64,000 nt of DNA, from NCBI RefSeq assembly GCF_964204865.1, contig NC_135258.1:14694001-14758000 (forward strand), given 5' to 3'. How positions within the stretch are numbered: position 1 is the stretch's first letter; each line of letters begins with the position of its first letter. Under the pieces are notes generated by a model. It made no database searches. It was not told the origin of the DNA and worked only from the letters and a program-made list of their open reading frames with translations. This document shows, one piece after another, positions 9,562 to 25,200 of this stretch. Source of the DNA: Styela clava (Eukaryota). The position numbers and the translations under genes were made by a program.

Positions 9562-10800
9562 ATGGCTCTTGTTCATGTGGAAATTCTTCTTAGACCAGAA
9601 TGTGTAGAGAGTAATAAAACTATTATAGCAGCAGTGGAAAAATATCAACATAATATTGGCTTCGAGTTAGGATCAGAGAAATACAAATTTTCTGATCCTG
9701 TATTAAATCAGAACGTTTTGTCAATATCAACATCAAACCATCAACATACTAATGAAAATGGATATGACATCAGAAATGGATTAAAATATCATTATCATGT
9801 ATACAAGCTATATGATTTGGAAGCAGCTGATGAAATGCTTGAAAATGGTGATGATAAAGACCTTCCTGCTGCATCACATTTGATGCTGCCATCAACAAAT
9901 TTACAAGGGCTTTGGGAAACTCTCAAATTTGACACAGATATTAAAAACAATCTCTTGCGTTATATTGAAACAATATTGTTTTATGCGGATAAAGGTGTTG
10001 ATTCAAATTTAATTTCTTGTAATAGAGTCGTGTTATTACATGGTCCACCTGGTACTGGAAAAACGTCTTTGTGCAAGGCACTTGCTCAAAAAATTTGTAT
10101 TCGATTGTCACATAGATTTCAGCAAGGATCATTACTTGAAATAAATAGTCACAGCTTGTTTTCGAAATGGTTTTCTGAAAGTGGAAATTTGGTCCGAAAA
10201 ATGTTTGCTAAAATAGAAGAACTAGTCCAAGATGGTGACAGTTTTGTTTGCGTTCTAATTGATGAAGTCGAGAGCTTGACTTGTGCCAGGGCTTCTCATG
10301 ATTCTGGTACTGAGCCTTCTGACTCGATTAGAGTTGTTAATGCATTGCTGACTCAAATTGATAAAATTAAGGAATATCCAAATGTTGTTATAATGACAAC
10401 TTCAAATGTTACTGGAAAACTTGACATGGCTTTCGTTGATCGTGCCGACATAAAGCAGTACATTGGATTGCCATCAGTTTCCGCCATATATGAAATATTA
10501 CGTTCTTGTATCCTTGAACTTATAAGAGTGAATGTCATTTTTCCAAGACAATATATTCACCCATTTGACTGGGTTCACCCTGAAGATGTAGATTATGAAA
10601 ACAAGGGATATTCTGAAGAACTGAAAAGAATATCTAAAAAATGTTCTGGACTTAGTGGCAGGGCCTTACGCAAGCTTCCTTTCATTACTCAAGCGATGTT
10701 TATTGAACCAAAAGTCTGTACGATGAAAGTTTTTCTGTCAGAATTATCCAAAGCTGTGGACTTGAAATTTCAAGAGTTGAAAGATTTAGCATACGATTAA
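9562..10800 (+). CDS. TRIP13: Pachytene checkpoint protein 2 / TRIP13 AAA+ ATPase, 412 aa, intronless CDS
   Basis: NRVVLLHGPPGTGKTSLCKALAQK (Walker A), EINSHSLFSKWFSESG, LIDEVESL (Walker B), EPSDSIRVVNALLTQID, AFVDRADIKQYIG, GLSGRALRKLPF. The ATG directly follows a TTTTTTTAG acceptor. Confidence 0.97.
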   Translation: MALVHVEILLRPECVESNKTIIAAVEKYQHNIGFELGSEKYKFSDPVLNQNVLSISTSNHQHTNENGYDIRNGLKYHYHVYKLYDLEAADEMLENGDDKDLPAASHLMLPSTNLQGLWETLKFDTDIKNNLLRYIETILFYADKGVDSNLISCNRVVLLHGPPGTGKTSLCKALAQKICIRLSHRFQQGSLLEINSHSLFSKWFSESGNLVRKMFAKIEELVQDGDSFVCVLIDEVESLTCARASHDSGTEPSDSIRVVNALLTQIDKIKEYPNVVIMTTSNVTGKLDMAFVDRADIKQYIGLPSVSAIYEILRSCILELIRVNVIFPRQYIHPFDWVHPEDVDYENKGYSEELKRISKKCSGLSGRALRKLPFITQAMFIEPKVCTMKVFLSELSKAVDLKFQELKDLAYD

Positions 10801-12380: not shown

Positions 12381-12816
12381 AGTTTTCTGTAAAGCGGCGA
12401 TTATGCTATGGTATGTTAGACCTCGAATTTTGGTTTTGTAGGTGAGATATTCCGCTTATTAGTTTGCTTTCAATATGCCTATGTCATGATAATAACTTGT
12501 ATTGTAAAGAATAAGGTACATCGTGCTTTGTTAAACGCGTTGACGAAGATATCAAGTTACGGACCAGTGGAATATTAAATACATCGAAGCGTATGGGTAG
12601 TTGCACAACGGGCTAATTTTTTAAAAGCTTAGATTTTATTATTAATGAAATTATCCAATAGAATAAAGCCAAGCATAGAGCAATTTACGGTAACATCGCA
12701 TTCAGACATGAGGATACTTAATAAATTATCCAATATCCTCCACTAATAAAACCTAGTATCCTATTTAGATTCAGACATGAGCATAGCTACATAATTAGGA
12801 AAATACTGTTGAAAAC

Positions 12817-15800
12817 ATGGCGACAAATGGCGTGAATTTCCACGGTACTTCGGAAAGCAGTCTTCTTAAAAACATTCTGAACATCGACGCCAACGAAAAT
12901 GTTGATGCAACACTCGTCGAAATGTACAGAGATTTAATATTCACAGCAGAGAGACTGAAAACTGGAATACAAACAGCGGTGGAACATGATGCAAAGTTGG
13001 CGGCAGAAAGAGCCGAGGAAGAAGAAGAAGAGGAGGAGGAGGAAGAAGAAGAGGAAGATGACGAGAATAGTGAAGAAGAGCTTGATGAAGAGGACGAAGA
13101 TTCTCCTAAACGAAAGGTAAGATGGGACAAGATGAAAATGAAAGGCATAATAAAAAATGCCAACATTTTGTTTCGAAAAATTTAGCACGCAGAATGCTGG
13201 CAGTTTTTAAATTTAAACGACTCCATGGTATTCAGTTATTGGTAATTGTATGAAAAAAACAGCTCCGAATTTTAAAACTTTTTTATGTTCAAATTTATAG
13301 CCTTTGCTCTACCGCTCGCATAATTTACTTTCATCCTCTTCAATTTGTGACATTTATCTTTCTATTGTGTGTGAGAATGATACACAATACGGCCTTCTCA
13401 AGACGAAAAACAAACATCGGTGATAACTGTGTGCTGTACTTATTGGTAAATCATTCGCGAACCTGACTGTTCCGCTTGTCAGAAAAACTTATGACTCATT
13501 TTGTACGTTCACACGCGGGCAGTAGTTGAACCATAATTTACGGATGCGAATCACCTTTGATCCTCATTTTATTAGCTCAACGAATGAGTACACGATCCTC
13601 CTAAATTAAAACACGCAATATTTGAGCAGCGCAAGTCTTTTGTTGCGTTTATATTTCATCAATAAAGCGGCCTGCGCTTTCATGAACAAAGTTTGTCGAC
13701 TGTTACTAACAATCAATACTGGTATTGAAGATTGTTTTTTTTATTGATGATGATTTTTGTGTAAAACCGCCATTTCAAACCCTCTGGTTGACAAGATAGA
13801 ATATCAACCCAATAAAATTGTTGCATTGTCCTATATAATTTGTTCTATTGGAATCTGCCCAAAGCGGTTTAGCCATTTTATTAATATTTAATAATCTCTA
13901 AATATTTGTACTGTATAGTTGACCTATTCGTTTTCAAAGTTTTCTGAACGTACAGTGGAGCAAATATTGGATAAGAATTAATATTTCGAAACGGCCATCA
14001 GTCTGTCGATTTTATTTTGAATTTGAATTGACGTTCGTCGATTTATATTTCCACGTTGGACATCGGGTTTGTTCAAGGAAAATGAAATACATTCTCAAAG
14101 TAATAAACACGCTCATACATAATGGTGCTCGTCGCTCGAGCACATTGAATTAGAGTTCTTAAAAAGACAGTCAGGCATTTCTTTTGGTCATTGAATATTC
14201 ATCCTATTCACGACAACTGTATTATACATATCATTCCAAAATGTCTAAATAATGAAGGAGCTTGAATTGAAAGACCATTACGTTTTCGACATATTAGTGT
14301 TAGTTATAGTTCCATTCTCGTCATATGTATGTAAGTTATTCACAATAAATACTACAATGTGTGTAACAGGATAAAAAGAAGAAAACAAAGAAGCCGTTGT
14401 CCGACATCGCTCAACTGTTGGAAGCTTTGTCTCTTGACAAAAAACAGAAGCAACATCTATTAATAAAGAAAGCTATTTTGCTCAAATTTGAAGAAGCATT
14501 GTTTGGAAACAACAATATTACGATGACGCTTGACTTGAGGTGAATTGAATATTATATCGGCTGAAATGTGCGCAAAGAAAAATAATAATAATGTGAGAGC
14601 CGATTAGGCGCTATTCAGTAGTTTTATGTCAAATTCCCTTGACTTATTTATCAAAAATGGAATTTTCCGACGTTAACGTTAAACAATTAATTTTTGACAT
14701 ATATGTCAACAAAACGCTTTTCGTCGTTTTCCCGCTGGAGGAGCGTTATATAAAATTTGGCATTGACATTGTGTTTTTGATAGTCGATTGGCTTGCTAGG
14801 AAGGTGTTTTTATATCATATTCAGTCCCGAATGCGACATAGATAAGAAACATCGCCGATCGATTAGTGGCTTTCATCTTGCCCAATTAAAATATCCAATT
14901 TTGTTTTCGAGCTGTGCTTAATTATCAACATCCCAGGCCGCTTTAACTTCGATTCAATAAAACTTGGAATGACATTTGTTATTTGATTGGATAACCCGAA
15001 TGGTCATGGCACTGAATCAGTAAACACATGTAACATTATATTTTGGAGAATAAAGATTGTAAATCCACGCTTTTTGTGGTATTAAGTGAATAGCCCTTGA
15101 TTTTGAATGACTTTCAAGGACCCACACTTAAACCGCCATTCATTAACGAGGACTATCTAAAATTCTAAATTAGAAATAAATTTTTAAATAAATCTGTATA
15201 TAATTTTCTGTGGTACATTCGTTAACTTTAAATTGAATTATTGTTTTATACCTTTGTGACGTCACAATTCTTTGACTGCTCTATTTTATTGATATGAGTA
15301 AATACGCATTGTTATATGAGTTGTTAGCACGATAGGGATTACTCGCGTTAAATAATATGCTCACAGGGTGAACATTTAAGTATACTATTGTTGTGTTATT
15401 ACAAATAGGTACATTTTTATTAAGTTCGTTACATACATGCTCCGCTTAACATCTGAACTTTTCAGAAAAGGAAATGAATATACTAGATAGATTTACTTAT
15501 GATTTTGTTTTCCACCAAAAAGTCAATCGATGAAATAGGAAGGAATAAATTAAAACCGCAATTAGAGCGTCAGCAAATTGTATTGACATGAGTAGTATCC
15601 TATTTCTGCTAGCTATTAATAAAATTATTTTGTATCGATACCATTACTATATGACACTATGGCACTCCCACCAGTTATAATAACAATTGTAATCGTTTGC
15701 TGAGCATCGTTGTATTTCAGCCTTTTGTTATGTTCGGCTTCTTTACATTCAATCCATTGTTCATCGTCACAATCGTGTACTTTTGTTGATCTTACAAACC

Positions 15801-18308
15801 CGTAAATGGTTCATATGAATCACGATTCCGTTGAGCCTATTTGAGTTTCATACGTTAGTAACTTATCATTCACATATGCTTATTTCGAAATGTAAATTGT
15901 AATTCTCCAAAAAAGTAAGTATACCGCAGCCCGCGGAACAATCCCAAGCAAAAATATTGGTTACTTATAAATGATATGCGCACTCCAAATATCTTTTGGT
16001 ACATTTTGATGTTTACCAAAGATTGTATTTTGCGCTTTATCAATAGTAGACACGCAGCAACGATAAAATATTCCTTATTTGGAAGAACTGCCAGATTCCT
16101 TATATGAATTTAGAAGCTTCCAATAGAAGTTTCAGTAAGTTCTTCTGATCGCTGTCTGAAAAAACTGATGAATGTAAATAGTCATAGTACAATTTTTAGT
16201 TGTAAGTTGTAGATACTATCTCCAATATACAATATTATTTATTTTTTCAGGCAAGTTGGCGGCGACGGAGAAAAGGATGGAAAACTTGAACAAATTCTAC
16301 AATGCCGAGATTTGACGAAATATATTCCGAAAGTACAAACAGAAAATGGTTGGTTCCTTTAAATATTGAACTTACAATATAGGCTCTCAAACATAACCAA
16401 TGTTTTAGACCGAGAAAGCCGAGACCAAATACATTTTGAAATATTATTTTTTGTTATTGAACGTTAAATATTCTAATTCGCCCATGATCAAGTAAGAACA
16501 GTGCAAATTTTTTCACAACATCTAAAGGTTCGATCTGTAGAACTTCAATCAATTTTAAACACCTTCACTGCTGTGTAGCTCTCTCACTTATAAAGTTTGC
16601 CTGACAATTTACATAGACGTTTTTAATGTTAAATTTTAGTGCACAATACAGCAGGGCTTTGCCCATGAATGGTATACCACCATTTCATTTATCAAGTTCG
16701 CAAAGCCATTCGCGTTTAATAAAAAAAAAACGTTTACTAAAAATTTGAAAATAATACGAAGTACATGAATATCATTTCTTAGCTACAATTAATTTGATCT
16801 GGCATGATCACCGAACATTTTGACATGGGATGGTGGCGGTGTGCTTCGGTTTTACCTGTACGAATGCTCTTATCTTCACAGTAAAGATTTCCTATTTTAA
16901 AAGAGGCCAGCTATAAATTTTTTTTTTCAGCAAAGAGTAAAAATATTTTCATCCGTTTTAGGAAATTCGTTAGAATTTGCCGAAAAAGCAAAACTTCAAG
17001 AATGCGTGAATGTAGCAAAAAATCCAACAGATATTTTAGGAGTCCTGAGACCAAAAACCCCGAAGAAAATTGCTTCAAATTTAATAAAGCAGCAATATAA
17101 TATAAGGTGAGCTGTTTAAAAATTACCAGCCCAAGAATTTGAATTATCAGTATTTTCAACAAACTTTCTGACAAAAAGCAACTGTGGCTTTGTACGGTTT
17201 TTATTCTATGAATTGGAACATGTATAAATCGCCAAAATATAATTGAAATCAATTTCAAAATTAGAAAGTTTAGGCGAAAGCTTTCTAAGCATTTGTGATG
17301 TCATAAATTGAATTCACGATAATTAATATATTATTGTAAAGATTACTGCATCCTGTTATTTGGCGCTGCGCGATTTATTGGAAATGTAATCCGCTTTTTA
17401 TATAATCCAGATGGAATACAAGCTCGGGCGAAGTTGAACCTTTTGATTTCTACAAGCTTGAGAAGCATTTCCGTAAAGGAAATGTACGAAAAGCATACGT
17501 GCAAACTTTATTATACGAACATAAAGTTGTACTCGAAAATTTCCGACAGCGATTAAAAAAAGATGCTGTGGATAGTGAGGATTTCGCACCAAAATGCATT
17601 TACGGAAAGAAAGACCCGTTTGCCGACAAACAAGCAGCGGGCGACGAAGATGTTCCTCCGATCCGCCCAAGAGATGAACCGAAATTCAAATGGCAAAGAT
17701 GGGCTATGCTGGAAGAACAGCACGATGTACTCGGACCAGAATTTCCTCCCGAGTTAAAGTGGATCGATCCCAAAGTAAAAACGCTATTGCGTAAACTTTG
17801 TGAACCTCTAAATGTGAACTTTTCGCCTTACGAAACTCCTAGTTCAATGTATATACTGGTAATAAAGGAAACGACTTCGGAAACCCTTTCTGAAATGGGA
17901 AGTCAGAGTCAGATATACATTGGCGGTGCGGACGAAGGAATCAAAAAGCGGTTTTTAGAGGGAGATGACTGCCATTGTATTAAAATGAGACAAAGCTTCA
18001 ACGAAATAAGTAAAATGGAGGAGTTCAAACCGTCCGCAACATCACTACTTATAGAATTACGATTACTGCTGGCGATTTCGAGGCAAGAACCGTATGCTTT
18101 ATTTGCCGTGAGGACCTTTGAAGATCCACGCACCCTGGGACGCGAAGTTCACGACCTTATTACAAAGGCTTTGTATTTAGATAACGATGAAATATGGGGA
18201 CCAGCAGTCAATATGAAATTTGGTCTTAACGTTAAAGAAGAAATGAAGAAGAGAAGAAAATACCTTCCCGATCATTTTCCAGGTTCTAAACGGAAAAATA
18301 AAAGATGA
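12817..18308 (+). CDS. Uncharacterised 536-aa protein with an acidic tract, basic NLS-like patches and a C-terminal GIY-YIG-like domain. Exons 12817-13116, 14370-14539, 16251-16348, 16962-17106, 17411-18308.
   Basis: All four introns are GT-AG with compatible phases (0,2,1,2), giving one 1611-nt open frame. The last exon has SMY-x21-YIG-x8-R-x7-H...E...GLN. Confidence 0.8.
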
Positions 18309-20059
18309 TTCATTGAATCGTGTTTTGTATTTCATTCCGACCGTCCTTGAATCAAATACTTTATATTTTTGCAATTACCGATGAGATGTATTGAAAATAA
18401 TTTCTATTATCCCGTCATGCAGACTTTTAAGTAGCATTGCACTTTTTGTGCCCAGTTCTGGCTGATGTAGTTTTCCGTCCAATTAGCAATCCCATAAGTC
18501 CTTATTAATGTTCCCTATTTTCGTAACGATGGTACTTCATCTTCAATTTTGCTGATTGTAAAGATTTGCTGAAAATAAGATCTAATTTTTATTCCTCGCA
18601 ATTATTTACTTCGTCAACTTCTAGAATGATTAAATTTGTGTGACATAATATATTATGGCACTATTTCAGCCGTACTTTTTTTTTTCTTTTTCAAATTGAG
18701 ATTCGTGTGGGAGTAACTGCTGGCCTAAAATAGATTAATGTGGTTGATATTATTAATAATTTATGAATTAAGTTAATTTTACCTTTGTTTTACTTTGTCA
18801 CTTTACTACTGCGTAGGTGTAATTTTACGCATTTAACAAACAAAATATTGCCCTTCGCAATTTTTTCAGAAGAAGCATAAGTGTTTAAATATATATTTGT
18901 TTTCACTGCACGATAGTCAATTATAACAACTCATTTTCTGCACTTAAAATTATATACCGTTGTTATATACTGCCTCACAGATGATGCACTCCATGTGGGT
19001 TCAGAAATAATGTCGAATGACAAGTTGCAAGGCAAGGGCTAGAAAACATCTAGTCTATGACGTTTGTAGTATAGCACTCGCGCATGTTAGAGCCAGTTGA
19101 TGATAACTTTCTCATTTCCTTTCGCGAGGAAATTTCAATCGAAGACATATATCAAACTTATTGGATGTATGAATTTTATGGTGATGATGACTAAAGCTTG
19201 AAGACGCAACAATTCGCAATTAGTGACATTATACGTAATAAGTTTTTGTGGTGAGGTATTTGTCATGAAAACTCTTTTAACAGTAGACGAGTAAATTATG
19301 ATGTGCCGTGTGAGCAACTTAACTCACATCTATAGCCTGTTCAAAGTGTTCACGACCAATAATCAACTTGACCGTTCCCATGTTTTTGGAACTTTTGGTA
19401 ATTTCCTTTACATGTATTTGCGACAGTCGGCGTTTGGATGTATATCGGATATCTGTTATTGATATATATGTTGTATTTCTGAAAATACTTCTTTATGGTA
19501 GATATTTGTTTTTTAGAAGATTGTAAAAAACTTGCTTCCCATTTGACCTGCAGAATTTACTTGCATAATTCTATGGTAGAAATAGAAACAGATCTCTGTT
19601 TATTATACTCTTCAACACTGATATAATGTAAATTAATAAGCCTAGTTTACTTTTTGCTTTCCAAAATGTAAGTGGAAATTTTTACCTTATTTGGATAAGG
19701 TTTGCTTACCAAAGGCCGAGTTATTTGTAATCGAAATATCCGTAATCAAAAATAGTGCATGAGCACAAAATTTTCACACTCAGGTTATATTTTAAATTTA
19801 ACCTGAAATACCTCGGTGACTTTGTGGATGAAATTAACGATCGATGTCTAATAAAAATAAGTTTTTCTGCAAAGTACACATTCATTAATCATTTTAATCA
19901 TTCCACGGCTACCCGGCATTATTTGTAACTTATGCAAGGTTGAAGCCTCTCTACTTCAAGTTATGCATGCTCGGCCATCTCGTAACTGTAAGAAATAAAT
20001 TAATTTTGATTCTATGCATCGATTAACTATCAAGCCGCATTGATGAAAGCGGATAGCAA

Positions 20060-21000: not shown

Positions 21001-22269
21001 CTGAGGATATTTTATTATCTCTGATAAGACTTAATAGTTCCTGTATGCGATTGTTAGTGTTCCGAGTGAGCTCTTTTATTTTTCGAATGACTTCGCCGGA
21101 AGGCTTAGCAAATAACCAGGGCATCGTGATGAGGCGATATCGGCACATTTTGATTGTTTTGAAGTGGTAGTTTATTTATAGATTTATGGCAGTGTAAGGC
21201 GCGATAACGATTGTAGGCATTTTTGTATGTTATATATGCGAAACTTACTCATTAAAGTGAATGGCGTTGAATTGGCACATTTATGCTAACTGTTAAATAG
21301 AAATTAATATGAACGAACTCGAATGAAACGTTTTTGTGAAAATGCGAAGCTAAATCATGTTGTGTAGTCGCACTAATCAATAACAAATGTATTAGCGGGG
21401 GTTTCGGTTGAGAAAACAGCCGAGTGAAATTATACTTCGGAAGATTCATTACTGAATTGCGTCGATATTGTACGATATTATACAGTTATACGGTATGTTG
21501 TTCGGGCTTGAATGATTGGATCTAGCGCCTTGGGTTTTGTTAAATTTTAACTCGGTGGGAGTGACGACATCTGCCAACCTATTTATAGTTCAGAATTTTA
21601 CTTAGCTTTACTTTGACGTTTTGTATCAGGTGACTGACAGGGATATATCTGTATATAGGATATCGTCTGACCGTTGGGCATAGTAACTCAAGTTTGTTTT
21701 GGGAACACATACAGACAGAGTTTGTACCATACTAATAGTTATAGTCAGTTTTTGTATTATTATTAATTCAGTTTCCTCGTGTAGCAGGTTGATTAAATTC
21801 ATATTTCGGGAGGTTTTAATTTCTGTATAACTATGCACACTTTCAGTTTCCGGTTTTTGCATCTGTACCGTATCTTTTACAGTATTATCATTCATTCAAA
21901 TTGCATTGTTGTTTTATAACTCCTAATTCTGTATGTTTGTTATGGTAGGCATTTGAAGTGGAATGTTCATAGTGTAGTTTGAATTAGTTATTGAAGTGGT
22001 TATTGGTATGGTTTAAAAATTAGGCTTTGTTATTATAGTGTTTCTATTATTATTTTATGTAGAAGTATGGTCAAAACCACAATTTGCTAGTCAGGTGTAA
22101 TAAATACAGAAATAGAAAGGATATACCAATGATATCATATTTAAATATATATTCAGAGAAAGCTATTGGATAATGGAGTGAAGCTTCCTTTGTTGTCAAA
22201 AATATATTATACGCTAACTAACAGTATATTTATTTTACTATTTAGTGTTCTGTATTGTATTGTGTAAAA

Positions 22270-25200
22270 ATGTTTAGTCCGACAGACATATGCGTGATTG
22301 TACATCGTGCCAAAAACCTTTTAATAAAAGGTAAAGGCAGTAATGATGCTTATGCTACAATGGAATTTGAGGGTGAAAAATATGCTACTAATGTAGTTGA
22401 AAAATCTAATTCACCTATGTGGAATCAAGAATGTCAATATGCACTACCCCAAGGTTGGTTTATAATATTGATATACATTTTTTGCATCTTTTTTCTAGTA
22501 GAAATAATCTTGTTTGTATTTACTGCTTGCTATTATCGATATCTTTTAATAAGCGCATCAAAATATGTCTCAACAAAGGTAAAATTGTTTCTATCATATA
22601 CAGATCTGTTGTTGTTTTGTTTTGCCAAACAAAAGATGGTTGTAAAAACATGAATTTCTCTGTTCTGACTCATTAGATTTAGATTTCTTAGCAAAGCAGA
22701 TTAAAATTGAACCATAAACAAACTCGAAAACTATATGTCAATAAATTTTTAAAATGAATAAACCTATTTTGAGAGTTGTAAAGTGAAGAAAATCTGGTAT
22801 TCTGAATATTTTATCTTGGCTGTTGTTCTTGAAAACTTATTTTTTTTCTTCGTAATATTATTGTTTACTGTAGAATTTGGTTTGATTCATAAAAAAATCA
22901 GCGGTGTGTGAAATTTGTTTCAGAATTATATTACAATTGTAAAGATTATAAAATGATTCATACTTTTTGTTTTCAGGTGGAGTGCTCGATAAACTGACGG
23001 TAACAATTACAGTTTACAACAAACAACATGGAAAATTTGGGTTACAAAATGATGATTTCATCGGACTCATCAAAATTCCTCTCAAAGATATAGGCATAAA
23101 TGATCACAAAGAAATTAGGAAGTTAGTATTTTTTTGGTGTTGTCCTCATGAGAGATTCCTTTTTCAAAATTTTCACATATTTTTAATATTTGTTGGCCTT
23201 TGTTCTTCTTTATGCCTGACATCGGAAAGTGAGTGTAATTAAGTCAGATCTACAAATGCACTCATTTTCATTATAATAGGTGAAGTAGCATGTAATATCC
23301 AAACCGTTTTTTTATGCTTCTCAGCTGTTGCTAGATTTGGCATCATATCCTATAAATAAGTGCTCACTTTTCTTGTCTATGAAAGAAAAAATATAGAGAC
23401 ATCACAAATGGGATTTATGACAATTTTCATATACTTAATACTTTATTTGTATGGCTGTTGGTTCCTGACTATATTGTGCTTTGGTCTTGTACTTGCGTTA
23501 TTATCTTATTTACTGTAATTATGCCTGATTATGGAAGTATAATAAGATATTCAATTATTTCTAGATGGTATAATCTTGAGCACAAAAATCCAAAGAAAGA
23601 GAAGAAACAGAGGGGAGAAGTCGAAATTGGATTAAAATTCATATGTAAAGACAGGTTTGTGCTATTATTTTGTGCTTCATGTATTTATATCATAGACTAC
23701 CAGGAAATTTCATTTACATGATTTGATAAGATGCTGCCCGAAAGACACTTGAATAGACAGACTATGGGTGTAAATTTAGTTTGTTACATCTGTAATATAT
23801 ACTATTTAGATAGGAATTAGGACAATAGAAATTACACTCCTATAAAATTTGACATTTTCACAGCTAAATAATATTGATTATTTTCGAATAAAATCCTTAT
23901 TAATGATTGTTCAAATTTATAATTAATTACAAGGCTATAATTATGAACTATGATTAAATATTTGTATATATTCATCTTTATTTGCTAGCTGAGTTGGTTT
24001 CTATGTCATGTAATACTTTAAAATCTTATGGAGCCATCTTGATTCTTACTGCAGTATCCTTGCATTATTATATGCATGTGGATTAACCTACCTCTTTTCA
24101 TATAAGAAGGATGGAAGTTAGTCTTACGTACCCCAATTGATAGTCAAGTTGACCTCATGACAAAAAATATGGAAATAATTTTAAGGTTAAATTATAAGTG
24201 AATTCCTAGTATTTTATCAATGACCAATTTCCATTCAGGTTGAGTCTTCTTCCGGACAAGAAAAGTCCCAAGAATTTACGACAGATAACTTCAAAATTAG
24301 GACAAAAATTACGAAGAAGATCAGAAGATGAAGATTCTGGTGTTGGAAGCGATAGTTTTTCTATGAGAAAAGGTAACAACATTCATTGAGTTTGTATATG
24401 TCGGAAATTTACCCTTTTACACATGTTTACTTCATATGTCTTATGCGAGGATTTCTTATCTCTCCCTGTGTACTGTTTACTCTCTCTCCCAGGGTGGTCT
24501 GTTTGTTTAGAGTCCTGTATTAAATAAATTGGAATGTGTCATTGAAATTTTGCATCGGACATAATCATCAATCTGATTTACTTATGATCTGCACAAGCAA
24601 ACTTGCTTAAAAGTTGGTAAATATAAATTGGAAGGACAGATTTTGATAAAGAAATAGGCATGTTTATTGGAGAGATTAAGAGGAGCATTGGAACATTTAT
24701 TGGAGAGATTTTTGTTTTCTATTTGCTAATGCTCACTTATTACTTTTACTTAGGTATAACTTTTAGATTAAATTAATTTTGATTTCAAATCAGTTATTTG
24801 ATTCATATTCAGGCCAATCTATGGATAATCTACACAGAACACCATCAAGTGCGAGTGACGGAGCTCGAAATAAGAAACGATTTTCAATTGCTGATGTTAA
24901 TCCGGTAGCTTCAGCAAGAGGATTAGTGAAGTAAGCGTCAATGTATTGATTTAGCATTTTTGAAATGTTACTTGATGAGACTGTCCATTGGGAAAGTTAC
25001 AGTTCTTGTAACAGCATTATAGGTTAAAATCTTCGTTTTAAATCCCATGCCCACCGTATCACCCAGTGTGTAATAAAAATTTGATGGGCAATGCCTAATC
25101 GTAAAGATTGTGGTCATTCCAAAATGAAGTAGCATCTTACTTTGGCTGCTTACATAGATCATTGTTCAGAGTGAAATGGAGCTCATTAATTCACTTCCTA

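Follow-up and report, generated by a model that had tools for sequence, protein, structure and literature searches.

A stretch of 64,000 nucleotides from the ascidian Styela clava (NCBI RefSeq assembly GCF_964204865.1, contig NC_135258.1, positions 14,694,001 to 14,758,000 of the forward strand; the whole stretch is called the window, and positions below are counted from its first letter) raises the question of what kind of protein is made from the gene at 12817-18308, which RefSeq lists as "uncharacterized protein LOC120339317". Our analysis indicates that this is a spliced, expressed and conserved ascidian gene, the last exon of which appears to encode a very divergent GIY-YIG domain with the GIY-YIG active-site set. 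The product is most likely a nuclear, Mg2+/Mn2+-dependent DNA endonuclease, a reading to which we give a probability of about 0.6.

Gene structure and transcripts

The gene consists of five exons on the + strand, separated by introns that all start with GT and end with AG. The joined coding sequence (CDS) is 1611 nucleotides long and comprises 536 codons followed by TGA. The exons are:

12817-13116, + strand: exon 1, codons 1-100, phase 0; N-terminal helix-rich segment, acidic tract and start of a basic cluster
14370-14539, + strand: exon 2, rest of the basic cluster and the strongly conserved block LLIKKAILLKFEEALFGNNNITMT
16251-16348, + strand: exon 3, conserved block KDGKLExIL.C.DL..Y.PK
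16962-17106, + strand: exon 4, where similarity to octocoral proteins starts (SP.D...KTPKKIA.NLI.QQYNI)
17411-18308, + strand: exon 5, 299 codons plus TGA at 18306-18308

Transcription was examined over 12650-18550 using contigs assembled from one genomic run (X10) and from three runs that are probably RNA, each from a different study (X1, X3 and X4). Spliced contigs with GT..AG skips at 13116|14370, 14539|16251, 16348|16962 and 17106|17411 are found in X1, X3 and X4; in the genomic run the introns are covered and none of the four joints is present. The contigs are taken to derive from RNA because of the spliced form itself, the kinds assigned to the runs being guesses made by a tool. The 5' ends of the transcript contigs lie at 12762-12777, and the 3' untranslated region extends past 18550. 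The five exons, four introns and 536-residue frame that had been proposed in the initial annotation, which was made from the letters of the window, are thus borne out. The same annotation called the gene unrecognised, which holds for its function but not for the gene model: the RefSeq model LOC120339317 predicts the same exon structure, and its protein (P0170, 537 residues) is identical to the window at 297 of 298 positions in exon 5 and 98 of 101 in exon 1. The gene model, then, is already in RefSeq, and it is the nature of the product that is newly recognised here. The gene is present as a single copy in the 377-Mb Styela clava genome. Among the best-supported differences in the CDS between the contigs and the window, 10 are synonymous and four are non-synonymous (two at codon 9, S382N and R431K), a pattern that, for a small sample, fits purifying selection.

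Some irregularities in the assembled reads also deserve mention. The run of Glu codons (GAA/GAG) at 13010-13068 breaks the RNA-type contigs, and the RefSeq protein differs there, with G and K interruptions and one additional residue; the run is likely to be polymorphic in length. An antisense open reading frame (ORF) of poly-Ser at 12795-13166 was set aside as the mere complement of this run. Likewise, a joint from 17974 to 18171 in X1 is likely an assembly artefact, having non-canonical TT..CT ends, a side of 23 letters and a single contig of depth 4. Unspliced contigs cover 15733-16081 within intron 2 at a depth of 2.2, in X3 only, and could reflect intronic transcription, pre-mRNA or DNA carry-over.

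Fold of the last exon and its active-site landmarks

The kind of protein encoded is indicated by predicted structures of the last exon (residue numbers given below are those of exon 5; adding 238 gives the full-length number). A first model, built from 12 sequences, reached a predicted local distance difference test score (pLDDT) of 72.8, and, among 48,161 PDB representatives, the four best matches to it were GIY-YIG nucleases. An AlphaFold2 (AF2) model built from 121 sequences reached a pLDDT of 85.6 and a predicted template modelling score (pTM) of 0.86. When it was compared with the 48,161 PDB chains, ranks 1-5 were all taken by GIY-YIG proteins (6.8/6.0/4.6/4.4, then a gap to 2.7), and the top four were the same for the 12-sequence and the 121-sequence model. 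The structure alignment covers 89 of the 92 residues of the I-TevI domain and 88 of the 89 of the UvrC domain. Foldseek searches of BFVD, a library of viral models, ranked an intron-associated phage endonuclease at the top (E 6.5e-4, probability 0.99), and about 20 of the top 50 matches were named GIY-YIG or homing endonucleases; a feature search of the ESM-Atlas listed a GIY-YIG cluster at 0.90.

The AF2 model contains strands at 144-152, 166-173 and 228-236, and helices at 177-181, 188-200, 213-223 and 239-255. As modelled, these elements form the GIY-YIG core: a three-stranded antiparallel sheet, with strands 1 and 2 as the GIY..YIG hairpin, flanked by helices. Traces of the same relationship are seen in relatives of the protein. 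One of them, P0084, scores 17.7 bits (E 0.0046) against PF01541 over the YIG-Arg segment, below the gathering threshold of 22.6 bits, and an octocoral relative matches RE_Eco29kI (PF09517) over the hairpin with a sub-threshold E of 0.054. With two aligners on two libraries in agreement, the models point to a very divergent GIY-YIG fold in the last exon.

The landmarks of the putative active site are located as follows:

17844, + strand: start of SMYILV, in the last exon
17850-17852, + strand: Y147, the Tyr of 'GIY', in strand 1 (M-Y-I)
17916-17918, + strand: Y169, the Tyr of 'YIG' in IYIG, in strand 2
17922-17924, + strand: G171, the Gly of 'YIG'
17949-17951, + strand: R180, in KKRF, first helix after YIG
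17973-17975, + strand: H188, the landmark His
18144-18146, + strand: E245, in REVHDLI, helix after strand 3
18228-18230, + strand: N273, in FGLN, the C-terminal Asn

Conservation within the family is concentrated on these residues. Across 121 relatives, L213, F231, G271 and N273 are invariant, and Y147, V150, Q167, Y169, G171, G176, R180, H188 and others are conserved at 90% or more. In an alignment of 35 sequences, G171 is present in all 35, Y147 in 33 and Y169 in 31, the remainder having Phe at the two Tyr positions. The helix after strand 3 retains a Glu in most relatives, and each of the three clades of the family (described below) has one: E245 here, a Glu one column off in octocorals and the Glu of 'LEQH' in tunicate clade B. 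The most conserved positions of the family coincide with the catalytic landmarks, which occur in the right order and in the right secondary-structure elements. In the alignment with I-TevI (model residues 143-276 to chain residues 2-93), Y147 falls on Y6 and N273 on N90, as placed by the alignment range; Y6, R27, E75 and N90 of I-TevI are important by mutagenesis (PMC1952068).

Several observations weigh against a GIY-YIG nuclease. Sequence-level significance is not reached by any method: Pfam, run on all five exon translations, yielded nothing apart from low-complexity noise in the acidic exon; PF01541 gave no match to the window protein even at E<=10; sequence searches of the PDB, whether started from the protein or from a profile of 35 sequences, returned no relevant match; and PHROGs, NCBIfam and PADLOC gave nothing significant, only coiled-coil noise in octocoral inserts. 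When the family profile was compared by hhalign with aligned Penelope-type GIY-YIG domains of the Styela genome, only 14 columns could be paired, at a non-significant E of 0.21, although the register of these columns (YIG..R, with R180 on the Penelope Arg) points towards the GIY-YIG fold; Foldseek found no match in the PDB at E<=0.001 with either model. In place of GIY, the first motif has MYI or LYW, with Met or Leu where the Gly would be. Finally, in tunicate clade A, to which the Styela protein belongs, Lys replaces R180 in five of 14 orthologues and Phe replaces Y169 in two, and in Ciona intestinalis an Ala stands at E245; judging from these substitutions, catalysis could be weakened or lost in some species.

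Protein layout, relatives and known GIY-YIG systems

The putative nuclease core is one part of a longer protein, and its extent and that of the other parts are listed below. Sequence searches were run on the individual exons, and full-length comparisons were made via the database proteins P0005 and P0170.

13015-13101, + strand: acidic tract, residues 67-95; 27 D/E within residues 61-100
17412-17837, + strand: accessory region, exon-5 residues 1-142, upstream of the nuclease core
17838-18239, + strand: GIY-YIG-like nuclease core, exon-5 residues 143-276, full-length residues 381-514
18234-18305, + strand: C-terminal tail KEEMKKRRKYLPDHFPGSKRKNKR, with two basic clusters (KKRRK, KRKNKR) about 10 residues apart

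All tunicate orthologues are acid-rich at the position of the acidic tract, the composition being kept and the sequence not. Directly after the tract, a basic cluster resembling a nuclear localisation signal (NLS), PKRK|DKKKKTKKP, spans the junction of exons 1 and 2. The accessory region holds many invariant residues that are basic or aromatic (KKDP, R.RDEPKF.WQ.W, ELKWI.PKVK) and is modelled together with the core as a single compact body formed by the C-terminal 300 residues; up to about residue 119 of exon 5, it had no clear structural match in the PDB structure search. The two basic clusters of the tail, which by their sequence may form a bipartite NLS, flank the motif LPDHFPG, and both this motif and the block LLIKKAILLKFEE.LFGNNNITMT are nearly invariant among full-length orthologues.

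Full-length orthologues with the same layout occur in Ciona intestinalis (LOC144744359), Phallusia mammillata and Clavelina lepadiformis, in addition to Styela. Every full-length relative is annotated as "uncharacterized", and Pfam detects no domain in any of them. Searched by itself, the N-terminal half of the Ciona protein matches tunicate orthologues only, and that of P0170 gave no usable match in the ESM Atlas. When 1.84 billion representative proteins were searched with a family profile, only 75 matches were returned at E<=1e-3, and the same hidden Markov model search detected no similarity to SLX1, ANKLE1 or ANKLE2.

A tree of 116 sequences resolves into three groups: tunicate clade A, which contains Styela clava LOC120339317; tunicate clade B, which includes Ciona LOC100183120 and Clavelina LOC143470313; and a large multi-copy clade. 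Clade B also contains a distantly related Styela paralogue on another contig (G000:C14:9803678-9807025), the orthologue of Ciona LOC100183120, with the motifs KIYVGSS…, …NHC… and …MRYGMN and with Lys at the position of Arg180. The only named members of the third clade are from the octocorals Paramuricea clavata and Dendronephthya gigantea, most of its members coming from ENA or Logan assemblies. Many of the octocoral paralogues (P0019-P0162) share contigs (P0025, P0095, P0098, P0110 and P0150 lie on one contig of 269 kb), and in the octocoral members strand 3 is separated from the Glu helix by a long coiled-coil insert. Our search of the literature on GIY-YIG proteins with tunicates, Ciona or octocorals found no paper on the LOC120339317 family. 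The family is undescribed and has been found so far in tunicates and in a clade whose named members are octocorals, a range that is provisional.

To our knowledge, host GIY-YIG proteins in animals are very few, namely SLX1, ANKLE1 and the pseudo-nuclease ANKLE2, besides the domains of Penelope-like elements. The Styela protein differs from each of these. In SLX1 the GIY-YIG domain is followed by a C-terminal RING/PHD zinc finger, whereas Pfam detects no zinc finger in the Styela exons or in the full-length orthologues; in ANKLE1 and ANKLE2, ankyrin repeats and a LEM domain lie N-terminal to the GIY-YIG (or GIY-YIG-like) domain, and Pfam finds no such matches in the Styela protein or its orthologues. 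Penelope-like domains share with the Styela core the GIY-YIG type and an Arg nine residues after the Gly of YIG. However, they pass PF01541, carry a Cys/His insertion and sit in multi-copy ORFs that contain a reverse transcriptase (RT), none of which is true of the Styela gene; it is single-copy, has four spliced introns and contains no RT domain in Pfam scans.

The bacterial and phage systems are also distinct. I-TevI's catalytic domain (1ln0) and T4 endonuclease II (2wsh) are only 11-15% identical to the Styela core, with no significant sequence match. The Tyr-Tyr hairpin of the core spans 21 residues compared with about 10 in I-TevI, and, in comparison with the phage nucleases, the core has an extra helix before strand 3 and an Arg-to-His spacing of 8 rather than 4. 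The Styela gene, a spliced animal host gene, also has neither a homing-endonuclease DNA-binding tail nor an intron context. The N-terminal GIY-YIG domain of UvrC (1ycz, 1yd6) is accompanied by a C-terminal endonuclease, helix-hairpin-helix modules and a UvrB-interaction region that are absent from the Styela protein, and the range of the Styela family, unlike that of UvrC, is eukaryotic only. A precedent for the long Tyr-Tyr spacer is provided by R.Eco29kI, in which the two residues are Y49 and Y76 (PMC1952068), although the Tyr-to-Arg spacing differs and the Styela gene has no restriction-modification context. We regard the family as a new branch of the GIY-YIG superfamily, distinct in architecture and unusual in taxonomic range.

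The elements that the initial annotation had read from the sequence are upheld by these results: the landmarks SMYILV, a 21-residue spacer, IYIG, KKRF, H, REVHDLI and FGLN lie in order where it had placed them; the N-terminal E/D tract, the basic cluster behind it and the C-terminal KKRRK and KRKNKR are all present; the divergent GIY-YIG-like fold is matched by both aligners; the partner domains that it reported as missing (RING, ankyrin/LEM and RT) are absent from the Pfam scans; and no full-length match to a characterised family was found. Its further suggestions, namely a nuclear location, a histone-chaperone or DNA-mimic role and domestication, are retained as inferences only, as would be any functional link to TRIP13.

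Alternative readings, proposed function and genomic setting

The substitutions in clade A bear on a reading in which the protein retains the GIY-YIG fold as a pseudo-nuclease, serving as a DNA- or protein-binding scaffold, with catalysis lost or being lost in the tunicate clade. ANKLE2, which reportedly has a degenerate GIY-YIG-like domain, would be a parallel. The changes of Arg180 to Lys (5/14), of Tyr169 to Phe in two orthologues and of Glu245 to Ala in Ciona intestinalis favor such a loss, as does the Lys at the Arg position of the Styela clade B paralogue. Nevertheless, the Styela protein itself keeps every landmark residue, Y147, Y169, G171, R180, H188 and N273 are each conserved at 90% or more over the 121 sequences, the R-to-K and Y-to-F changes are conservative, and H247-D248, which lie beside E245 and are invariant in clade A, could compensate. 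We consider a pseudo-nuclease rather unlikely, if worth keeping in view. Far less probable is the absence of any GIY-YIG kinship, in which case the protein would be a lineage-specific nuclear protein of some other function with a chance alpha/beta resemblance and coincidental motifs. Such a coincidence is difficult to reconcile with ranks 1-5 of 48,161 chains coming from one superfamily, with the gap from 6.8/6.0/4.6/4.4 to 2.7, with the repetition of the result using a second model and an independent aligner and library, with the alignment of nearly the whole I-TevI (89/92) and UvrC (88/89) domains, or with the match between the most conserved positions and the catalytic landmarks in order and secondary structure.

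A mobile-element or viral origin, with the family partly selfish still, would make the tunicate copy a domesticated one and the octocoral copies element-borne or part of a fast-evolving defence family. The patchy known range (tunicates and a clade with octocoral named members), the clustering of octocoral paralogues, for example five on one 269-kb contig, and the closest structural relatives, which are phage homing or host-DNA-degrading nucleases, are in keeping with such an origin, as are the canonical GIY-YIG matches of mobile-element type in the Styela genome, which number at least 88. The tunicate gene, however, is single-copy with four introns, is flanked by ordinary host genes (TRIP13 and an apparent C2-domain gene), and is represented by orthologues in four ascidian genera; it contains no RT, transposase or other element domain detectable by Pfam; and its sequence does not resemble that of the genome's Penelope-type domains (hhalign E 0.21). 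This origin seems to us improbable.

If the preferred reading of a nuclear DNA endonuclease is correct, the order of parts along the protein (N-terminal helical segment, acidic tract, NLS-like cluster, conserved middle block, accessory region, GIY-YIG core and bipartite basic tail) suggests how it might work. GIY-YIG nucleases use a one-metal mechanism. By analogy, the Tyr, Arg and His residues would position or activate water and stabilise the scissile phosphate, the Glu would hold Mg2+ or Mn2+, and the Asn would support the site. DNA could be bound by the accessory region, through its invariant Lys, Arg and Trp residues, together with the basic tail. Nuclear import may be directed by both basic clusters, in particular by the tail, which looks bipartite, and, more speculatively, the acidic tract beside the basic cluster might mask the DNA-binding surface or bind histones.

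A more ambitious proposal, which we put forward tentatively and regard as doubtful, is that the protein is an active founding member of a new animal GIY-YIG branch, with its own DNA-binding module, an acidic tract that, in tunicates, acts as an intramolecular DNA mimic or histone-binding regulator, and a new nuclear role in genome defence, programmed DNA processing or repair, the range of the family having arisen by horizontal transfer or repeated loss.

The upstream neighbour of the gene is TRIP13, encoded by a single ORF of 412 residues at 9562-10800 on the + strand, residues 3-410 of which match the PDB structure of TRIP13 (E 1e-117). It ends 2016 bp upstream on the same strand, in agreement with the distance of about 2 kb noted initially. 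An operon of the two genes was considered and rejected on account of this 2016-bp intergenic gap and of the transcript contigs starting at 12762-12777, and nothing beyond adjacency was found that would tie the nuclease gene functionally to TRIP13. The TRIP13/Pch2 gene is uninterrupted (intronless), beside a gene with four introns, and may be a retrogene or reflect a trait of the lineage. About 4 kb downstream of the nuclease gene, ORF pieces at 22255-23721 (+ strand) read as C2-domain-like (…VIVHRAKNLLIKGKGSNDAYATMEFEGEKYATNVVEKSNSPMWNQECQY…), which suggests a multi-exon C2-domain gene.

Elsewhere in the genome, a scan with PF01541 found at least 88 places, none of them at the LOC120339317 locus. 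Examples are G000 C14:12473966-12557991, with four copies about 21 kb apart, and C18:14240445-14246989. Some of the matches lie in ORFs of 900-2870 residues, which belong to elements of Penelope-like and other kinds; others fall in ORFs of 151 residues at even spacing.

The classification of this protein illustrates how proteins that are blank in every sequence library can be classed by predicting their structure from a family alignment. The family would also give a handle on a large and unexplained expansion of genes in octocorals, and since Ciona is genetically tractable, its function is accessible to direct tests. If the proposed reading is true, a conserved and expressed family with an intact active-site signature has been missed by Pfam, and its recognition would give the chordate (tunicate) toolkit a further nuclease.

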